Positions 5,140-31,884 of a stretch of 64,000 bases of DNA are shown one piece after another. Position numbers and translations under genes: made by a program. The DNA lies in NCBI GenBank assembly GCA_019828565.1, contig JAHDYR010000062.1, positions 1,188,421-1,252,420 on the forward strand, in the 5' to 3' direction. Each line of letters starts with the position of its first letter. Within the stretch, counting starts at the first letter, position 1. Under the pieces are notes generated by a model. That model was given only the letters and a program-made list of their open reading frames with translations. It was not told the DNA's origin and made no database searches. Source of the stretch: Carpediemonas membranifera BICM. Its lineage: Eukaryota; Protista; Fornicata.

Positions 5140-6102
5140 TTAGTACTTGGCCTTGTACTCCTCGAGAGTGGCGGGGGTGTAGTCGCCGGCGTGGCCAGCA
5201 GAGCCGAACGCGGTCATCTTGATCTCGGCCTGGGCCTGGATGGCGTCACGACCGGGGCGGAGGTAGTCGCGGGGGTCGAACTTATCGGGCTGCTCGGCGA
5301 AGACCTTGCGGATGGCGCCAGTCATGGCCATGCGGAGGTCAGTGTCGACGTTGATCTTGGCGACACCGTTCTTGACAGCGGCCTGGATGGCAGAGATCGG
5401 GACACCGCAGGCGTCGGGCATGGCGCCTCCGTACTTGTTGATCTGTTCGCGGAGCTCGATGGGGACGGAGGAGGAGCCGTGCATGACGAGGGGGATGTGG
5501 ACGCGGTCAGAGATGGTCTTGACAAGGTCGATGGCGAGCTTGGGCTCGGACTTGAACTTGTAGGCGCCGTGGGAGGTGCCGATGGCGACGGCAAGGCAGT
5601 CGACGCCGGTGGTCTTGACGAAATCCACGGCCTGGTCGGGGTCGGTGAGCTGGACCTCGCCGGAGATATCCTCCTCGATGCCGCCGAGAGTGCCGAGCTC
5701 AGCCTCGACGGTGACGCCGAACTGATGGGCGTAGTCGACGACCTCCTTGGTGATGCGGACGTTCTCTTCGTATGAGTGGTGGGAGGCATCGATCATGACA
5801 GAGGTGAAGCCGAGGTCGATGGCGGTCTTAACGGACTCAATGTTGTCGCCGTGGTCCAGGTGAAGGGCCATAGGGATCTCGGGGTTCTCCTCGGAGGCAG
5901 CCATCATGAGGTGCTTGAGGAAAATGAGGTTGGTGTACTTGAGGGCACCGCGGGAAGCCTGGACGATGAGAGGGGACTTGACCTTCTTGGCAGCAGCAGA
6001 GATGGCCTGGATGGCCTCCATGTTGTTGACGTTAAGAGCGGGGACACCGTAGCCGCCGGCGATGGCGTTGTCGAGGATCTGCTTGAGAGGGACGAGAGGC
6101 AT
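5140..6102 (-). CDS. fba: Fructose-bisphosphate aldolase class II (Giardia-like)
   Basis: MPLVPLKQIL start; ALHLDHG, SVMIDASH, VEAELGTLGGIEE, AIGTSHGAYK, LVMHGSS, KINVDTD; strong codon bias. Confidence 0.96.
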   Translation of the reverse strand: MPLVPLKQILDNAIAGGYGVPALNVNNMEAIQAISAAAKKVKSPLIVQASRGALKYTNLIFLKHLMMAASEENPEIPMALHLDHGDNIESVKTAIDLGFTSVMIDASHHSYEENVRITKEVVDYAHQFGVTVEAELGTLGGIEEDISGEVQLTDPDQAVDFVKTTGVDCLAVAIGTSHGAYKFKSEPKLAIDLVKTISDRVHIPLVMHGSSSVPIELREQINKYGGAMPDACGVPISAIQAAVKNGVAKINVDTDLRMAMTGAIRKVFAEQPDKFDPRDYLRPGRDAIQAQAEIKMTAFGSAGHAGDYTPATLEEYKAKY

Positions 6103-7010
6103 CTGTGTAAGGTAGCAATGATAAGATAGCGCATCAGGCGCTAAGTTGAACAAACTTGATCTTTCGGACTTTCTGTCGTTCTGAATGATGACGATTCGTT
6201 GAAGATCGCGTTCGAAAAAAAGTTCCAAGCCATAGAACTCGGGCGCACACGCGGTCGACGCGGCCGACAACAACATAAACATCGTCTCTCCACCCAGACA
6301 GGCCAGCTGCGGGGGCCAGTCAGGTTCCCCGCGAGACCCTGGAGCACGAGTTCGGGTCATGGAGCCCAATGTCGTCAGGGGCCCTGGGCAATTGGCAGCT
6401 GAATACCCGGTGCCAACGCAACCTCGCGGCTCCTCACTGAGTGCAATCCACTTCATCCCCTCCCAACATTACCCACAGCTCCGAACTCGACGAGCTGCCC
6501 TGACAACCTTGTTTCTATCGCTTGCGCTATAAGCGGAGTCAACTCGGATAGTGTCATGTGGAGCTTCTGGGCAAGCTTCTGAAGCATCGTAAGTGGAGTT
6601 TTGTGCAGCGGGTTCGAGGGCGAGCTGGTCGATAGCTCGAGGCGACTGGCAAAGGCGGTTGCCTGTGACCTCGCGTGCTGTGCGAGTCTTATTACGTACT
6701 GTACGGTGAGGCAACACGATCGAACCGATAGCCGATTGATATCTGACCCTGCCATGCTTGCAGGAGACTCGGCTGAGTAACCCTGCGTGACTCAGGTTGA
6801 GTCACATCGACAATAGAATATGATTACGCTGGGCTCACCATAGGTCAGACATGAGGAACAGAGCCGAAGACATCCATTGCTGCTGTAAGATCAGTAAGGG
6901 CTGCGGCCGTCAGACATGTCCCCGGCATGTGATTCATATTTCCACCGAGCTTCACACTAAGCTTACATTGATAAGCTTCACTCTAATATGCCATGGTAAT
7001 GAGGCATGGC

Positions 7011-9981: not shown

Positions 9982-10314
9982 TTCAGCTAGATAAGAATGG
10001 GAAAGAAGACTCAACTAACGAGTATAAGTTTTGACAATGGTGTGGTGCAGGAAAAAAGCTGGCAAAAAAATTATCTGCTTGATCAATGTTCTGCGTGTGT
10101 GTTCTGCTGTTCTCTGTAGCGTCACTACCATGCACTCGGAACGTTTACGCGCAACACAACTGTACAACGGCCACCATCTTCCCACAAGGACGCCGCGCTT
10201 TAAGACCCCCCACTGTAGACTGCGAGAATAGAGTTGACTGGCAATCCCCTACATAAGGGTCTAGCGGCTGCTCAGGGCCTCGTCTCGGTCGACAGTCATG
10301 ACGAGAGCAATAGA

Positions 10315-10780
10315 ATGAATTCCAGGAAGCAGGCCGAGCCCGCATTAGACAAGTACATCAAGGATATGCTGAGGCTCCAGGGTATCACTGAGTACGACCA
10401 GAGCGCTGTTCGTGCTCTCTCCGAGTTTTTGTACGGTTTGTGCTCCACTGTCCCAGTGTAACACAGGATACTGCAGAACACTCACCTATCAGACGCATAG
10501 AAACATGCTCCACCGCCATGCGTCGCAAACAACTCCTCAGGAGCAGGTATTCACTCCCGAGATGGTACAGTTCGCCATCTACCGCCTCCAAACCCTCCTC
10601 TATGCTGACGTAGGCGCACTTCCAGCGGTAGGCGTGCCCCAAATGCCGCCACAGCTTCCCCAGGCCCGCAACACCGGCACTAAGGTCCCTCGGCCAGACA
10701 TGTCGGACGCCACAATCAGCACGATGAGGCCGACCTTCGACTACCTCCCGAAGAAGCGCGACAACACGCAGGCCCAGTAG
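10315..10780 (+). CDS. TAF9: TFIID subunit TAF9-like histone-fold protein; 31-nt intron 10436-10466
   Basis: Spliced: MLRLQGITEYDQSAVRALSEFLYGYCRTL...EMVQFAI, matching the TAF9 MGITEYEP..LEF pattern. Confidence 0.6.
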
Positions 10781-10865
10781 GCTGTGTAGTGAGGCTGTTC
10801 TTGTTATGCACCGACGCCTATCAACCAGGCACGTGTCTTAAATGACTGCGGGTCCTTTTTATGTC

Positions 10866-11513
10866 TTAGTAGAAGTCCTCGTCGATGGTGGTACCACACA
10901 TGGGAACGCTGCCGCGGTACTGCTTCACAGCGGGGCGGCTCCAGCCACCGAAGCTGGCCCAGTTGTGGGAAAGGCTCTCGACGCCGTCGTAACGGGGCCA
11001 CCACAGCTGCATGTCGGCGAACTCCTTGCTGTTGCAGGCGATGGGGTTCCACTGGGACTCGGAGGTGTACATGCCAACGCGGCCAGGCCAAGAGGCGTGG
11101 AGGGTGTCGATGATCTTGTGGAGGAAGGCAACGTTCTCGGCGCATGTAGAGAAGTAGAGGGCCGTGTTCTCGACGTCGATCCACATCTGGATAGAGCTGC
11201 TGTAGACGCCGTCAGCCTTGAGCTTAGCAACGGTGTCGTGCACCTGCTGGACGGGGTCGTGGTGCTTGGAGGGGAAGAAGTACATGTCGACATACTTGAT
11301 GCCCGCAGCCTTGACGTTGCGGTAGGTCTGTCCGACATACTGGTTGTACGCACCAGTTGATCTCTGCGCTTGCAGGACGGCAAAGTCGCCGTAGCCGTTC
11401 TTCACGAGGCACTCGAAGTCGGAAATAGAGGGAGCGCCTTGGAAATAAGAGACATCAAAACCTCTGCTGGCAAGAACGACACCAATCAGAAGAAGAACGC
11501 AGATGTGCTTCAT
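10866..11513 (-). CDS. Secreted GH25 lysozyme (protist/nematode type)
   Basis: Signal peptide MKHICVLLLIGVVLA, RGFDVS, MWIDVE (DxE), LWWPRYDG, FGGWSRPAVKQY, IDEDFY. Confidence 0.92.
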   Translation of the reverse strand: MKHICVLLLIGVVLASRGFDVSYFQGAPSISDFECLVKNGYGDFAVLQAQRSTGAYNQYVGQTYRNVKAAGIKYVDMYFFPSKHHDPVQQVHDTVAKLKADGVYSSSIQMWIDVENTALYFSTCAENVAFLHKIIDTLHASWPGRVGMYTSESQWNPIACNSKEFADMQLWWPRYDGVESLSHNWASFGGWSRPAVKQYRGSVPMCGTTIDEDFY

Positions 11514-11868
11514 GGTTGTGTTTTGGTCTTCCAGATTCTTCTCCGTCGAAAAGCAGGAAATGAGCGTCATGTCCTTTTGGCATGTGGCAGACACCTTGTT
11601 TCCAGGGCTAACAGTCTGCAGCGCTGCTCTCTCGATCCTCGGCGGACCAGCCGACACCAGCTGCCGACGTCACAGATGTGCCATGCAGCTGGGTATCAGT
11701 GGCGCAGCCTCGGGGATGGCCAACGTCTGCTGGAGTCGGTGCCACTGCCATCTGGCGGTTATCCCCCTCACAGCCGGCATGGCCTTTGCTGGTTTGTCAT
11801 CTTCCATCGTGACTAGTTTGACTCGAAGGAGTCATCCACACATCGCAACGACAGTTGAACGAGCGGAC

Positions 11869-17825: not shown

Positions 17826-18938
17826 TCAGCCCTTCTTCTTGTCATGCAGCCTAAGATGCCCAGCGTTGATCCCCACACCAACTAGCGCCCTCAGTGCAGC
17901 TATATTAGACGCTAGCCCGGCACAAGCCATCGTCCGGCCCAAACAGTCGGCCGTCGTCTCGGGAAGAAGACCCAGCGCTGCTCTGCAGGCCGGGTGAAAG
18001 GTGGTTAGACCACCCACGACACCGATGGGACACGCGACATCCACAGTGATTGTCAAAGTGGTTGTATCTGCAGATTCTGTGACCACACACCGTGACAGCG
18101 GCTTATACTGCCCGCCGCTGCCGGCATAGAGGTGGTTGGCGGCCTCTATCGCCCTAGTGTCCTGCCCACTCGCCATGGCGACAGCAATGACACCGTTCAT
18201 GATGCCCTTGTTGTGGGTCACGGCTCGTTCAGGCAGGGCCTGTGCCAGCTCGAATGCCCTGCTCAGGTCACCAAGTCGCCCCCGGTCCTCGCCAGACCCA
18301 GACAGTGTGGCAGACGCGGTGTACACGCGTCCCTTGGCGTCGTTCGACAGTATCCTACAGAGCACACGGCCCGGGGCGACGTCAAGCCAGCGTCCCACGG
18401 CCTCCATCATGCGGTTGATCGCATTGGCACCCATGGAGTCGCCTACGGACACCCTGACGGTGAGCACGGCGCTGTCTGGCCCCAGTACAGTGGCAGCCGC
18501 GTCGGTCGCCCGGCAATGGTGGTGGCCTCGGTTGGCCTCGGATAGGATGGCTTCGCGTTGGGAGTTCAAGTGCTCCACGACCCTCTGAGAGTTATCGAGC
18601 TCAATCAATTGGATCATTCCCGTCATATAGGGGTCTGGTGGCGCCGTGGTGGTGAACCCCCCATTGGCATGGACGAGGCGAGCCCCATTAGAGCATGCAG
18701 CGACGACTGATGACTCCTCAGTGCACATAGGAACAAGATACTCTAGGTCATCGATCTTGAAGTTTGGCGCTACAGAAAGCGGCAGTGCAACAGCACCGAC
18801 AACGTTTTCCGAGATCTTCTCAAGGATTTGCATGATTTCGTCGTCCAATCGCGGTATTTCAATCTTATTCCCGACACATGATGCTAGCTTTGCCCGCTTT
18901 TGCTCAAGTGTTAACGTATGAAAGCCGCTTATTCTCAT
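17826..18938 (-). CDS. HMG-CoA reductase class II (bacterial type)
   Basis: MRISGF start, ENVVG, PMCTEESSVVAA, DSMGAN, RILSN, THNKGIMNG, GQDTRAIEA, GINAGHLRLH. Confidence 0.93.
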   Translation of the reverse strand: MRISGFHTLTLEQKRAKLASCVGNKIEIPRLDDEIMQILEKISENVVGAVALPLSVAPNFKIDDLEYLVPMCTEESSVVAACSNGARLVHANGGFTTTAPPDPYMTGMIQLIELDNSQRVVEHLNSQREAILSEANRGHHHCRATDAAATVLGPDSAVLTVRVSVGDSMGANAINRMMEAVGRWLDVAPGRVLCRILSNDAKGRVYTASATLSGSGEDRGRLGDLSRAFELAQALPERAVTHNKGIMNGVIAVAMASGQDTRAIEAANHLYAGSGGQYKPLSRCVVTESADTTTLTITVDVACPIGVVGGLTTFHPACRAALGLLPETTADCLGRTMACAGLASNIAALRALVGVGINAGHLRLHDKKKG

Positions 18939-19221
18939 CCTAATCAAATGATTACCCATCCCATTTTGAAGTTCCAAGCCCAGCAATACGGATGTTTACA
19001 ATCAGTACCTCAACGGCAGAACTACTTCTATCCCAACGGCAGTGTCTCCACCATGGCCACCGCACTTTAAGACAAAATACCCCATGCCGCGCGGGGCGCG
19101 GTCTGGCTTACGTGTCACCGAGGAGTGTATGTAAAAACTTTAAGACACACTACCCACCTTCCTCGAAATATTCACCGCTGGATGTCAGCCTGCTCTGCTG
19201 ACTTCATCCGCTCCACACAAT

Positions 19222-26849: not shown

Positions 26850-27356
26850 TTACGCGAGGAGCGACTGGTGGAACTGGGTGGCGACCACACGAGCGCGAGA
26901 GTTGACATCGAGCTTCATTTCCGAGATCTCCTTGTCGATTTCCTCGAGGAACTGGACGACGAAGTTGACAACCTTGGCCCGGGCCTTGGCCTCGACGTGC
27001 TTGTTCTCGATCAAAAGAGAGATGGAGTACCCCTCAACGGGCACACGGCGGAGGATGCCGAACATCTCAGCACGCTTCATGAGCCAGGAGCAGAACTTGT
27101 CGACGAGGATGCGGTCTATTTCATCAAGGAACTTCAGCTTGATGCTGATGCGCACAGAGTTCACAGATGGCTCAATAAAGACCTTCTCGTGAATAGTGCG
27201 GCAGATAGTGACGGGATTGAGGATCAGCTCGGGGTTCATCCTGGTCTCCACCTCTGGCTTGTTGTGACGCTCCACAATCTGGCTGGGGAAGTTTTCAATG
27301 CAGAGAGCTGCGTCCAGTGTCTCCCTAACTGTCTGGATAAAGGCTTGCTTGTTCAT
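26850..27356 (-). CDS. ARPC4: Arp2/3 complex subunit 4 (p20)
   Basis: [70 protein letters not shown]. Confidence 0.96.
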
Positions 27357-28082: not shown

Positions 28083-28790
28083 TCAGAAGGGATGCCCCGG
28101 GCCGGAGCAGCCCCCCTTTTGCTTCAGCCGGTGAATAAAGTTCTGGCACTGGCGAAGGGAAGGAAGGTCGGCCCCGGGCATCATTTCTGCTAGATCTTTG
28201 AGGACCCGCGATGGCTTCTTCCCCTCGCCAATGGCTAGCTCGCAGATGGCGACCTTAATGTTTGCTGGGATCCCCCTGCGGGCCGGCTTCGGTGCGATCT
28301 GGGGGTGAGTGCCTGCTGTGTCCTTGTGTACAATGTGGCGGAGGTCGCAGTAGATGTAGCGGCACTCGAGCGTGCAGTCGGGCTCGTTGCACTGGCACTT
28401 ATAGCGCAGGCACATGATCGGGTGCCCGTCTGCACACATAGTACACGATACACGGTCGGACGCTTTCGCCAGCCATGTGGTGAGGCCCGAGTCCTTGTGC
28501 TGGCGGATGGCGAAGCGAACATCATCTTCTGCCCAGCTCTCTATGTTCAATTGGCTAGTAATATCAGTTGAAACCCACGGTTTGCCCGATATAGTGGGTT
28601 CTATGTCCAAGTCATCGTTTGAGCCGGGCAGCTGGTCGTTGCCGATGGGCTTGGTTATTGGTTTAGACCATCTCCGCCCGTCGACGATCAGCTTTCGACT
28701 TAGCTTCGCTTTGCGCATCTGTTTCGCCTTAAATGCAATAAGTTTCGCGTCATCGGCCTTCAGGGGCTCTGAATTGATGTTGAGCCCCAT
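28083..28790 (-). pseudogene. Putative MULE-transposase-like DNA-binding fragment (Zn finger plus helical domain), no catalytic core seen
   Basis: RYKCQCNEPDC...GTHP followed by RRGIPANIK..GKKPSRVLKDL..LPSLRQCQNFIHRLK; upstream frame broken by TGA at 28845-28847 and 28944-28946. Confidence 0.4.
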
Positions 28791-29165
28791 ACGGTGGTTG
28801 TTTCTTCGACTGAGTCCCGCCGAGTCTGTCTCAATATCTGGATGTCATCTAGCAGATCTTCTCAGCCTGGATGGATTGCCTGAGTCCAGCTTACTGCCAC
28901 TGCTGTCTCCCGGCGTGTGGTGTCGACTTGCACTCGACTCAAGTCAAGTCATGGACGATGAATGGATGGTATTCACGGTGGTTAGACGGGGTGCCGGCAC
29001 CATGTGATGTGATCTCGGCGGACAATGCAATCCACAGCCTCGGGTTGGGTAAAACTCGCTTCTTTTGCCGGAACTCAAAATCGTCTCATTCACAAGATTG
29101 AGCCAAATCGCTCGATAACACTCACTTTAATCAATCAAAAAGCAATCAACACCAGGGCACTCCCC

Positions 29166-29885
29166 TCACTCATCCCGCGTCATCCGCAGCCCATCCCGCC
29201 TCAGGGCACCGATCCATGCTCCACGGACAAGGCCGCAGGGCTCCTCGCATAGGTCTGCCTTGTTCAGAAGAATGTGCCGCTTGGCAGTGGGGACCTGTCG
29301 GGCTGCCTCCTCGTCCAACGCACGCACAACTCGCTCGAACGCTGGACGACTTAGGGTCGGCCCGCCGGCGATGGCGCGGACAAGCTCTGGTCTAAACACG
29401 GTGCTGTCCGATATCTCTGCCCCCAGTGCATCCAGCCCGGCTACTGTGACGATGTCAGTGGCGTGCTGGGCGATGACGGGCTCGGCCGGGCCGAACGCCT
29501 TGAGGGGAAGCATGCGGGCCCCGTCGGACTCGACCATGACGCAGTCCGCGATTCCGGCAGTGATCAAGGCGTGCGGGAGGGCGGGGTCGACGCCGACTAG
29601 CCGCTGGCCTCCGTTCATGTAAGAAGTGGCGAGGACGATGATTGAACCTGGCTCGATGGTGTGCTGGGACAAAAGTTCATCTGGGGAAGATGCGAAGATC
29701 GCTGGGATAGAACGGCCGTTGTTGAGGCGTGAATCACGATCAGGAGGCTGGATCTTCGTCGTTGTAGTGACGACGACGCGTAGCCCTTGTTGAGCGGCGT
29801 ATTCGGCGAGAAGATATGTCAAATGGGTCTTTCCTCCGCCTCCAACAGTGCATACAATCGTCCCTTTCCCGATATCAACGATCAT
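29166..29885 (-). CDS. yqeC: YqeC-like selenium-dependent hydroxylase accessory protein
   Basis: IVCTVGGGGKT, VVVTTTTKI, VMVESDGARMLPLKA...EPVI, VAGLDALG, VFRPE, ILLNKAD in the YqeC order and spacing; intronless. Confidence 0.85.
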   Translation of the reverse strand: MIVDIGKGTIVCTVGGGGKTHLTYLLAEYAAQQGLRVVVTTTTKIQPPDRDSRLNNGRSIPAIFASSPDELLSQHTIEPGSIIVLATSYMNGGQRLVGVDPALPHALITAGIADCVMVESDGARMLPLKAFGPAEPVIAQHATDIVTVAGLDALGAEISDSTVFRPELVRAIAGGPTLSRPAFERVVRALDEEAARQVPTAKRHILLNKADLCEEPCGLVRGAWIGALRRDGLRMTRDE

Positions 29886-30441
29886 TCGTTCACCCTTGCC
29901 TCTCTCGTGGCCCAACTCGCTTCGACCCACAGCCTGCCACGGGGCACAGTCTGACGCCATGGCAGCGTCGATCAATGCTCGTGCACTGACGGGCGCGATG
30001 TCCAACCTTACCCGCCGTCAGCAGCCTACTGCGTCGCCACCCAAGACCCCAAGGCACTGGGGCAGCCGCGTGCTGGCGCGATGGGCCACACTCTGCTCTG
30101 CTATCCTTGCGGTGACCTCGAGGCCACCGGGTACGTCCACAGTCAGTGTCCCCAGATAAACGTCAATTATGTGCCCCGATGGATGACAACAACGCTCGTG
30201 TCGGAGCAACAGTGTTGCTGAGCGTCACCGACAGGAAGGGGTGGTCATAATGTGTGAGCCACCCCAAAGGCATTGGAGCCACATCAGCCGAGCACAGCAC
30301 TTCCCAACCCCCCTGTTTCGATCCGCATGCCTCTAGGGTTGCACCTCTTACCATCCTTGTAGAAGCCCAGCCTCCCACGGTTGTACAGTTTATTCGACAT
30401 GTAAATGAACATCGGTAAAGATATTCAAGAACACACTCCCC

Positions 30442-31884
30442 TCAGCGACCCCGGACCTTCCGGATCATCCCAGAGACGTCCCCGAAGCTGGCCTCTGTCA
30501 CCACGAGCACGGCGTCCTGGACCCGATCCTCCCCCGTCGCAAACACCAGGTAGCCCTGCGACTCTGCCCACTTTCTGAGCCGGCCGAACTCCTCTGTCGA
30601 CACGAAGCCCCTGATGGCCCTTACGGAGGGGCTGAGCACCTTCACGCGGTGCCGCTCCTGCTCCCACAGACAGATCTGGTCCTTCACGGTGTCCGGGATC
30701 CACTTTAGACGGTCGCCCTGCTCTGCCGACTCTGAGGCGACGGCCTTGCCCTGCTCCTTGGCGTCCTCGAGGAGGCGGGCGAAGATGGCGGGGTGGACGT
30801 GCGCCTCGAGGTAGCGGATGATGTCACTGGCCGACAGACCGTGGTGGAAGGCGTCTCTTATGGAATGGGGTGTGATCTGGGACACCACGAGCCCGTCGAG
30901 CTCGTAAGCCAGCTCCGCGAACAGCTGGATGATCCCTATATGAAGTGGATCGTCTGTGTAGGCGTAGACCTTGAAGTTCGACTCGACCACGATGAATCCC
31001 GCCTTGACAGTGTCATACGTCGCCGTGATGGAGGAAAGCATGGCGCTCAGAGTGGTCGGGACGACGATCAGCTCGCCCGCAAAGGACTTGTCGGCGCCGT
31101 CGGGGGTCTTCTTGCCCGTGAGAGTGGGGGAGTAAACGATCCCCGCCTGGTGAAGGATGGCGATGAGTGACCGTATCGGATCGGATGCATCTGACACTAT
31201 GTACGGCGTCCCGGGGACAAGGGGGGCCAGCTGGAACAGCAGCGTCATGAAGCGGAGCACGAGACTGCTACCAGCATCCGTGGAGAAGGACTGGACGTAT
31301 CCCAGGCAGAAGAGCCACACCTGCGAGCGGGTACTCGAGAGGAGGAAGCGGCGACTGTCGCTCGTGGGACCGAGGAGGCCGTTCGCTCGCTTCAGTAGCC
31401 CGCACTTGAGTAGGGCGTCGAGGGTGGGGCTGCGCTGGGTGACGGTGTTGTTGGCCTGCAGCACGAGCTCCATGACCCGCTTCCACGAGGCAGTCGCATG
31501 GGCCTCTGCCTCGGCGGAGAGGGCCTGGCCCGGCAGAATGGTGAATAACGCGTCCTTCGATATTGTTGAGCCGCTTGTGACGGCGACTATGGCGTTGATA
31601 AAGGTCTCTTTGAACTCGGGGTTGATCTCATAGTTGAAGTCAGAGAGCTTGAGAACCTTCAGGCGGCATAGGAGGTCAAGATGCTCTCCAATAAGCTGCT
31701 TATACTCTGCTTTTGACCAGCTCTCGATCTCCGACCGTGGTGTGGCATAAGGCATCACTGAAAGACGAGTAACAATCGTTTGTGCTAATGGCGGCATATA
31801 CCGAAAGATAGAGTAAACGCACGACGTATTTTTGTACAATATTGCCACATTGTCGTCCTGGCGGAGCAGGAAGTCCCACAGCAT
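30442..31884 (-). CDS. TFB2: TFIIH subunit Tfb2/p52
   Basis: SIFRYMPPLAQ, FLLSSTRSQVW, GFIVVESNFKVYAYT, GLSASDIIRYLEAHVHP, IPDTVKDQICLWEQER.R. Confidence 0.93.
   Translation of the reverse strand: MLWDFLLRQDDNVAILYKNTSCVYSIFRYMPPLAQTIVTRLSVMPYATPRSEIESWSKAEYKQLIGEHLDLLCRLKVLKLSDFNYEINPEFKETFINAIVAVTSGSTISKDALFTILPGQALSAEAEAHATASWKRVMELVLQANNTVTQRSPTLDALLKCGLLKRANGLLGPTSDSRRFLLSSTRSQVWLFCLGYVQSFSTDAGSSLVLRFMTLLFQLAPLVPGTPYIVSDASDPIRSLIAILHQAGIVYSPTLTGKKTPDGADKSFAGELIVVPTTLSAMLSSITATYDTVKAGFIVVESNFKVYAYTDDPLHIGIIQLFAELAYELDGLVVSQITPHSIRDAFHHGLSASDIIRYLEAHVHPAIFARLLEDAKEQGKAVASESAEQGDRLKWIPDTVKDQICLWEQERHRVKVLSPSVRAIRGFVSTEEFGRLRKWAESQGYLVFATGEDRVQDAVLVVTEASFGDVSGMIRKVRGR

Follow-up and report, generated by a model that had tools for sequence, protein, structure and literature searches.

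A duplicated gene of the bacterial YqeC family in the nuclear genome of the anaerobic fornicate Carpediemonas membranifera

The yqeC gene of Carpediemonas membranifera

Among the biological routes of selenium use, the one that runs through the labile selenium cofactor found in molybdenum hydroxylases is the least understood, and has been regarded as being restricted to prokaryotes. The subject of this report is a gene of the YqeC family, a marker associated with this route, that is found in a 64-kb stretch of DNA (64,000 nucleotides, hereafter the window) from Carpediemonas membranifera, a fornicate (Metamonada) that is anaerobic and free-living. The identical protein is recorded in assembly GCA_019828565.1 of this organism, on contig JAHDYR010000062.1 (1.55 Mb). 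The minus strand of the window harbors an unbroken open reading frame (ORF) at 29166-30005, which is TTG-initiated at its longest, and within which the following gene is read:

29166..29885, minus strand: yqeC coding sequence (CDS), 239 amino acids plus stop, with ATG at 29885; an intronless P-loop nucleoside triphosphatase (NTPase) gene of bacterial type

The original prediction, made from the letters of the DNA, listed a series of YqeC motifs in this ORF, and every one of them is present: GGGGKT (residues 15-20), TTTTKI (40-45), ESDGA (119-123), PLKA (127-130), EPVI (135-138), GLDALG (150-155), and NKAD (208-211). Scoring against hidden Markov models (HMMs) of the family, which had been proposed as a check, gave 135.7 bits (E 1.9e-39) with NCBIfam TIGR03172 ('selenium cofactor biosynthesis protein YqeC'), whose equivalog cutoff is 73.05 bits, and 111.4 bits with Pfam PF19842, for which the family cutoff is 27.6 bits. 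In addition, an alignment of 32 sequences, which comprises the window YqeC, a paralog described below, and 30 bacterial or metagenomic relatives, contains 17 invariant columns, all of which are kept in both Carpediemonas copies (G15, G17, G18, K19, T20, T43, E119, D121, G122, P127, K129, A130, E135, P136, G150, L151, and N208). The ORF is thus confirmed, at the level of sequence, as a genuine YqeC-family gene, with a match that lies far beyond chance.

A second copy, and selection on both

The best database match to the window YqeC, at 92% amino acid identity, comes from the same assembly, where it lies on contig JAHDYR010000015.1 (0.93 Mb) and bears the GenBank name 'putative selenium-dependent hydroxylase accessory protein YqeC'. 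At the DNA level, blastn shows the two loci to be homologous over only 756 bp, with 29159-29913 of the window corresponding to 10031-10784 of the paralog locus (L001) at 93% identity. This duplicated segment consists of a 28-nt leader, the CDS, and 7 nt past the stop codon, and no synteny between the two Carpediemonas loci was detected by blastn past it. The elements involved are:

L001 10001-10777 (JAHDYR010000015.1), strand opposite to that of all its neighbours: second yqeC copy, 92% identical in amino acids and 93% in nucleotides
29886..29913, minus strand: shared 5' leader of 28 nt with a 1-nt indel relative to the paralog; non-coding; upstream edge of the duplicated segment
29159..29165, minus strand: downstream edge of the duplicated segment, 7 nt after the stop; the 3' flanks diverge fully after TGAGGGG

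Given its orientation opposite to that of its neighbours, the second copy could have arisen either by retro-copying or by the insertion of a small segment. The genes that surround it are eukaryotic and unrelated, and encode MutS, RNase PH, AMPK-beta, an MRG/chromo protein, and a GNAT acetyltransferase; internal stops interrupt the straight translation of at least one gene called at this locus, which indicates that the gene contains an intron.

The shared leader also bears on the choice of start codon. The public gene models (264 and 258 amino acids) are both longer than the reading of 239 residues; since, owing to the 1-nt indel, the two copies do not keep a common frame upstream of the shared ATG, it is the shorter reading that is to be taken as real. 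The intact, intronless ORF of 239 amino acids that had been predicted at 29166-29885 is therefore upheld, its ATG start being preferable to those of the models generated by gene callers.

The two copies share the same length and the same stop, and differ at 19 residues, none of which falls within the conserved motifs. Comparison of the window copy with its paralog yields a dN of 0.039, a dS of 0.169, and a dN/dS of 0.23, a ratio that indicates purifying selection on the protein since duplication.

Bacterial origin

Once the paralog is set aside, the best of the 620 matches found among 5.8 billion proteins are 36-40% identical to the window YqeC, all of them carrying PF19842, and the named organisms among these 620 matches are anaerobic bacteria. 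When 185,579 reference genomes of prokaryotes were scanned, 80 named yqeC loci emerged, at no more than 41% identity, in Thermodesulfobacteriota, Bacillota, Chloroflexota, Eisenbacteria, Spirochaetota, and Acidobacteriota. The search of 5.8 billion proteins returned no sequence between 41 and 92% identity, so that no ortholog is seen in other eukaryotes, C. frisia included, provided that the collection covers it.

A phylogeny, also among the checks that had been proposed, was built twice by a quick tree method, with 95 metagenomic rows in one tree and 84 named rows in the other. In both, the Carpediemonas pair is recovered with 100% support inside bacterial diversity, and the stem that leads to it measures 1.4-1.5 substitutions per site. 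Neither tree offers a supported sister to the pair, and the backbone of both is unresolved; the length of the stem and the lack of a supported sister mean that the bacterial donor cannot be named. The nesting of the pair among bacterial sequences, together with the lack of any eukaryotic relative other than its own paralog, argues for a bacterial origin by lateral transfer, in agreement with the original prediction.

The codon usage of the two genes lies near that of the host, at its low end, with a GC content at third codon positions (GC3) of 0.67 and 0.71 (host, 0.79 +/- 0.05) and a codon adaptation index (CAI) of 0.585 and 0.609 (host, 0.69 +/- 0.05). Such values fit those expected of a foreign gene that may be ameliorating or weakly expressed. 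They could also be read as those of an unexpressed transferred gene that is drifting towards loss, and it is of note that the Carpediemonas genome paper describes some other acquired intronless genes as silent, without RNA-seq support. However, both frames have remained intact and of equal length after a dS of 0.17, dN/dS is well below one, and the catalytic-type motifs are all kept, which renders the notion of a dead passenger very improbable.

Setting within a eukaryotic chromosome

The gene content of the window was established by Pfam and NCBIfam scans of approximately 50 ORFs. The features that are relevant for the placement of yqeC are:

30442..31884, minus strand: Tfb2/p52, a TFIIH subunit (PF03849, 208 bits; PF18307); true upstream neighbour, 556 bp from yqeC
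28083..28790, minus strand: Cys-rich ORF of 235 amino acids, immediate downstream neighbour, 375 bp from yqeC; a gene in the public annotation
26850..27356, minus strand: ARPC4, the 20-kDa subunit of the Arp2/3 complex (PF05856, 225 bits); eukaryotic context
40274..41960, plus strand: protein kinase gene resembling cyclin-dependent kinases (Pkinase, 210 bits), with two introns of ~35 nt (GTACGT...CAG)

The gene had been described as lying between ARPC4 and TFB2; Tfb2 is indeed found directly upstream, but ARPC4 is not adjacent, with the ORF of 235 amino acids intervening. The recognisable genes of the window are eukaryotic, and encode a class-II aldolase, RabGAP-TBC, a fimbrin-like protein with four CH domains, protein kinases, PRP3, N-myristoyltransferase, ARPC4, Tfb2, a condensin Cnd1-like protein, kinesin, proteasome alpha, E2F/DP, a DEAH helicase, RRP36, a MACPF protein, and a SANT/DAMP1 protein. 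In the kinase gene, 10.4 kb from yqeC, the GxGxxG, VAIK, and later motifs are spread over three reading frames, with exon pieces, located by reference, at 40274-40354, 40390-40455, and 40491 onward. These introns mark the contig as belonging to a spliceosomal eukaryote.

Bacterial contamination, or a chimeric assembly join, could be proposed as an explanation for an intronless gene of a bacterial family whose GC3 and CAI are somewhat below those of its neighbours, and prey bacteria are present in Carpediemonas cultures. Nevertheless, genes of the eukaryotic contig lie within 375-556 bp on both sides of yqeC; the second copy resides in a separate eukaryotic contig; homology between the copies stops at the borders of the CDS, with no bacterial flanking DNA; and no bacterial sequence of more than 41% identity exists in either the protein collection or the reference genomes. 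Two dispersed insertions in megabase eukaryotic contigs, without bacterial flanks, essentially exclude such an artefact, and the observations support the residence of yqeC in a real eukaryotic chromosome.

Several other genes at the two loci merit description in their own right. The Cys-rich ORF at 28083-28790, between yqeC and ARPC4, displays a run of CxxC/CxC-like spacings in the middle of the protein and has no match in the Pfam or NCBIfam scans; the possibility that it could be a diverged YqeB was considered and rejected, as it matched neither TIGR03309 nor a purpose-built YqeB HMM. In the kinesin ORF (35697-37739, minus strand), a low-complexity stretch that is probably an in-frame intron splits the P-loop motif. 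The HMG-CoA reductase at 17826-18959 (minus strand) is of the bacterial class-II, or NAD 'degradative', type (TIGR00532, 232 bits, just below the cutoff of 260), and its CAI (0.52) and GC3 (0.64) are lower than those of any other gene in the window; both its type and these values suggest that it is probably another lateral acquisition. On the same strand are found a GH25 lysozyme-like protein (10866-11570), a protein with a SIR2_2 domain (33017-34822), and one with a MACPF/perforin domain (55917-56909); in protists, GH25, SIR2_2, and MACPF domains often have a bacterial or patchy origin. The class-II fructose-bisphosphate aldolase (5140-6456, minus strand) is matched by Pfam from residue 123 onwards, and has either an N-terminal extension of ~120 amino acids or a mis-set start. 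At the paralog locus, near the second yqeC, two genes of bacterial type are carried by the eukaryotic contig on the minus strand: one (L001 11705-13672) encodes a protein of 655 amino acids with tandem bacterial solute-binding SBP_bac_3 domains, and the other (L001 19616-20777) a dehydrogenase of the Ldh_2 family.

The predicted protein

The AlphaFold2 model of the 239-residue protein has a mean predicted local distance difference test score (pLDDT) of 87.9 and a predicted template modelling score (pTM) of 0.85; its last 12 residues are not confidently modelled, the chain being disordered after residue 227. Foldseek and profile searches identified no solved structural relative of YqeC, and only remote matches to SIMIBI proteins were obtained. 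The top Foldseek matches were FleN, FlhG, MinD, ParA/Soj, NifH/BchL, MeaB, and SRP54/FtsY (probabilities of 0.8-1.0, template modelling (TM) scores of 0.3-0.47), while the profile of the YqeC family matched ArsA and FtsY in the P-loop region only, with E values of ~1e-5. YqeC is thus modelled as a small, divergent P-loop NTPase of the SIMIBI class, to which its similarity is remote.

This assignment can be examined in light of the features that the protein shares with SIMIBI NTPases such as the MeaB/G3E GTPases, ArsA/Get3, SRP54/FtsY, MinD/ParA, and NifH. The predicted fold class is common to all, as is a deviant, glycine-rich Walker A motif, and a motif of the NKxD type, as found in GTPases of this class, is also carried by the Carpediemonas protein; the low TM scores and the restriction of the profile matches to the P-loop region, on the other hand, set YqeC apart from them. 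The combination of a glycine-rich Walker A, an E-x-D-G motif, and a nearly invariant N-K-x-D suggests a nucleotide-dependent, chaperone-like protein. NKxD is the guanine-specificity motif of GTPases, and the nucleotide employed by YqeC is, on the basis of this motif, probably GTP. Since the protein carries neither an N-terminal extension nor an organelle presequence, it is likely to be cytosolic.

YqeC and its partners in bacteria

The genes that accompany yqeC in bacteria provide an indication of the process in which the family participates. ORFs from 82 bacterial yqeC loci were clustered, recurrent neighbours were named with NCBIfam, HMMs were built, and all loci were rescanned; counts refer to the 52 loci that offer at least 5 kb on both sides of the gene, a partner being a gene located within 10 kb. 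A partner involved in molybdenum cofactor maturation is found in 46 of these 52 loci (88%), with the following distribution:

MocA: 40 of 52 loci (77%)
YqeB: 30 of 52 loci (58%)
XdhC family: 24 of 52 loci (46%)
Molybdenum hydroxylase large, FAD, and Fer2 subunits: 21, 20, and 21 of 52 loci, respectively
SclA-like selenocysteine lyase / cysteine desulfurase: 9 of 52 loci
SelD: 7 of 52 loci (13%)

The canonical order is exemplified by Pseudodesulfovibrio P0012 (L004), in which the genes are arranged as Fer2-MoCoBD-FAD-MocA-YqeB-YqeC-MoCF. Judging from these neighbourhoods, the family is tied foremost to the maturation of the cytosine-dinucleotide molybdenum cofactor (MCD) of enzymes belonging to the xanthine-oxidase family, with a looser link to selenium genes, and, set against the link with MCD, that with selenium may be given too much weight by the name 'selenium cofactor biosynthesis protein'.

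The 6 loci of the 52 that lack a partner belong mostly to a clade of Eisenbacteria, in which yqeC lies beside GGDEF cyclases. In Candidatus Eisenbacteria (loci L003, L006, L017, L030, and L056), the YqeC proteins form a tight clade, and their genes directly follow that of a GAF/GGDEF diguanylate cyclase; MocA, YqeB, XdhC, and the hydroxylase are all absent within 10 kb. This arrangement is a hint that the family may have a second role.

In the literature, the signature of the selenium trait is YqeB and YqeC occurring together (Peng et al.), YqeC on its own not being diagnostic, and roles of YqeC that are independent of selenium are allowed for. The use of YqeC as a marker of the selenium-cofactor trait, as made in the original prediction, was thus overstated: the pair is needed, and deletion of yqeC has been seen to cause no clear phenotype.

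Selenium in a related fornicate

A precedent for the presence of this system in the lineage is provided by the diplomonad Spironucleus salmonicida, also a fornicate, which has tRNA-Sec, the machinery for selenocysteine (Sec), and a bacterial-type SelD-NifS fusion, as well as multi-copy genes of the YqeB family that were laterally acquired (Xu et al. 2014, PMC3916229). The same work states, of an S. salmonicida gene known from the papers of Haft & Self and Zhang et al., that it was 'previously not detected in any eukaryotic genome', and speculates on a use of selenium independent of selenocysteine (PMC3916229); the idea of such a use in a eukaryote, put forward for C. membranifera, had therefore already been raised in 2014. 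The supplements of that paper name no YqeC, no hydroxylase accessory protein, and no molybdenum hydroxylase. The two fornicates are alike in that both are anaerobic and carry, in several laterally acquired copies, a marker of the same putative system of selenium and molybdenum hydroxylase maturation; they differ in the gene of the pair that they carry, namely YqeB in S. salmonicida and YqeC in Carpediemonas. The two halves of the signature have now been seen in two different fornicates, which makes it more likely a priori that further parts of the system were acquired by the lineage.

The yqeC of Carpediemonas adds a eukaryote to a known family; GenBank already labels it YqeC, but it is so far undiscussed. 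In the literature searched, no paper ties YqeC to a eukaryote, and nothing is said on selenium or molybdenum enzymes in Carpediemonas. Neither selenium nor molybdenum nor xanthine dehydrogenase comes up in the genome paper or its supplements, and in the C. frisia paper molybdate figures merely as an inhibitor of sulfate reduction.

Proposed readings: a maturation NTPase, a complete selenium trait, or a co-opted orphan

The explanation that we favour, and consider to be probable, is that of a lateral bacterial yqeC that was duplicated and placed under selection, and whose product would serve as an accessory NTPase of the SIMIBI type in cofactor maturation, with partners encoded elsewhere. According to this scheme, a bacterial yqeC entered the nuclear genome of C. 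membranifera by lateral transfer and was then copied, with little beyond its CDS, to a further site in the chromosomes that is not linked to the first, the two genes being retained under purifying selection. The protein would be a probably GTP-dependent NTPase that takes part in the maturation or insertion of a cofactor, as has been inferred in bacteria, where it would work with MocA, YqeB, and XdhC; in Carpediemonas, the genes for such partners would lie elsewhere in the genome. Comparison with bacterial YqeC proteins, such as that of Pseudodesulfovibrio P0012, is consistent with this scheme in that the Carpediemonas proteins exceed the curated HMM cutoffs, fall into the same length class, and carry all the invariant residues. 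They differ, however, in being just 34-41% identical to any bacterial YqeC, and in that their genes are nuclear, occur as two dispersed copies, and have no YqeB, MocA, XdhC, or hydroxylase neighbour.

A number of observations weigh against the proposed scheme. Only 10 of the 14 near-invariant columns of the family alignment are kept, the changes being K95R, A120S, P139A, and G193E; the GLFKG segment, found in the bacterial family, is absent from the Carpediemonas proteins; the C-terminus of both copies is ~15-35 residues shorter than in bacterial relatives; and the TIGR03172 profile is matched over 1-195 of its 209 positions, the last beta-strand apparently being absent. The altered positions, the lost GLFKG segment, and the short C-terminus suggest that activity may have changed, and the Carpediemonas YqeCs are, by sequence, divergent members of the family. 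In addition, no yqeB, selD, mocA, xdhC, or molybdenum hydroxylase gene is present in the 85 kb around both copies (64 kb of window and 21 kb of paralog locus, out of a 24-Mb genome). The biochemical basis for YqeC function is thin even in bacteria: in C. difficile, the sole yqeC knockout has no clear phenotype, while a yqeB deletion matched that of selD. The silence of some other acquired intronless genes, as mentioned above, points in the same direction.

The search for partners in these 85 kb deserves further comment. The Pfam and NCBIfam scans of the approximately 50 window ORFs gave no partner; a six-frame scan with the HMMs built from the bacterial loci, for YqeB, XdhC, MocA, MoCoBD, FAD, Fer2, SelD, SclA-like, and MoCF proteins, matched YqeC alone; the unannotated ORFs beside both copies gave no NCBIfam match to YqeB, SelD, or XdhC; and the window holds no tRNA and no Rfam family, and thus neither a tRNA-Sec nor a selenocysteine insertion sequence (SECIS). 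The absence of partner genes nearby is nonetheless weak evidence, because eukaryotic genes need not cluster. The claim that C. membranifera may employ a non-selenocysteine selenium cofactor is, in consequence of the lack of any partner gene in this DNA, not established, and stands as speculation.

A more extensive scenario would have C. membranifera possess the whole selenium-dependent molybdenum hydroxylase trait, namely SelD, YqeB, YqeC, MocA/XdhC, the synthesis of the molybdenum cofactor, and an enzyme of the xanthine-dehydrogenase family, with a labile selenium cofactor that is not selenocysteine. The score of YqeC above the equivalog cutoff, the retention of two copies under purifying selection, and the location of the closest bacterial relatives within canonical clusters all speak for it, as do the YqeB-family genes, SelD-NifS fusion, and Sec machinery of S. 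salmonicida, which place both selenium handling and the other marker in the lineage. Nonetheless, the vicinity of the two copies holds none of the required partners, the Carpediemonas papers and supplements that were searched mention neither selenium nor a molybdenum enzyme or xanthine dehydrogenase, the Spironucleus tables name no molybdenum hydroxylase and no YqeC, and YqeC by itself is not diagnostic. Many further genes of bacterial type, MocA included, would also be needed; the form of the cofactor that MocA produces is not known in eukaryotes. The presence of the complete trait is thus judged unlikely. A broader version of the idea, in which fornicates would have inherited or assembled a bacterial labile-selenium system, and C. 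membranifera would either mature a selenium-dependent molybdenum hydroxylase or employ proteins of the YqeB/YqeC type in a hydroxylase-free selenium role that does not involve selenocysteine, is similarly doubtful; in both cases the result would be a form of selenium use hitherto described in prokaryotes alone.

A different possibility, to which we grant somewhat more credit while still regarding it as tentative, is that yqeC is an orphan that was co-opted as an NTPase in a process unrelated to molybdenum hydroxylases, such as the trafficking of selenium or of a cofactor without a hydroxylase, or a process with no link to selenium at all. The very long stem of the pair, the truncated C-terminus, and the four changed near-invariant positions would fit altered constraints, partner-less YqeC proteins do exist in bacteria (the 6 loci of the 52, with Eisenbacteria beside GGDEF cyclases), and selenium-independent roles are compatible with the literature. 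Single-gene transfers are, furthermore, the common case in metamonads. Conversely, the preservation of all 17 invariant residues, including those of the nucleotide-binding motifs, and the association of 88% of bacterial loci with molybdenum cofactor maturation argue against a role outside this process, and the missing neighbours carry little weight in a eukaryotic genome. What lies beyond the complete trait and the orphan falls to intermediate cases, among them a participation in molybdenum cofactor maturation without selenium.

Significance

C. membranifera keeps two selected copies of one marker gene of the labile selenium route, and the other marker has been seen in the same phylum. If the partners are present, a selenium trait so far described only in prokaryotes would be extended to eukaryotes, and a system would become available in which yqeC, a gene without a clear phenotype in bacteria, has been kept as two copies. 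Should the partners be absent, YqeC would have a function that does not depend on them, which would be informative for a family that is uncharacterised. Otherwise, yqeC would be one more of the many bacterial genes that anaerobic metamonads have acquired.

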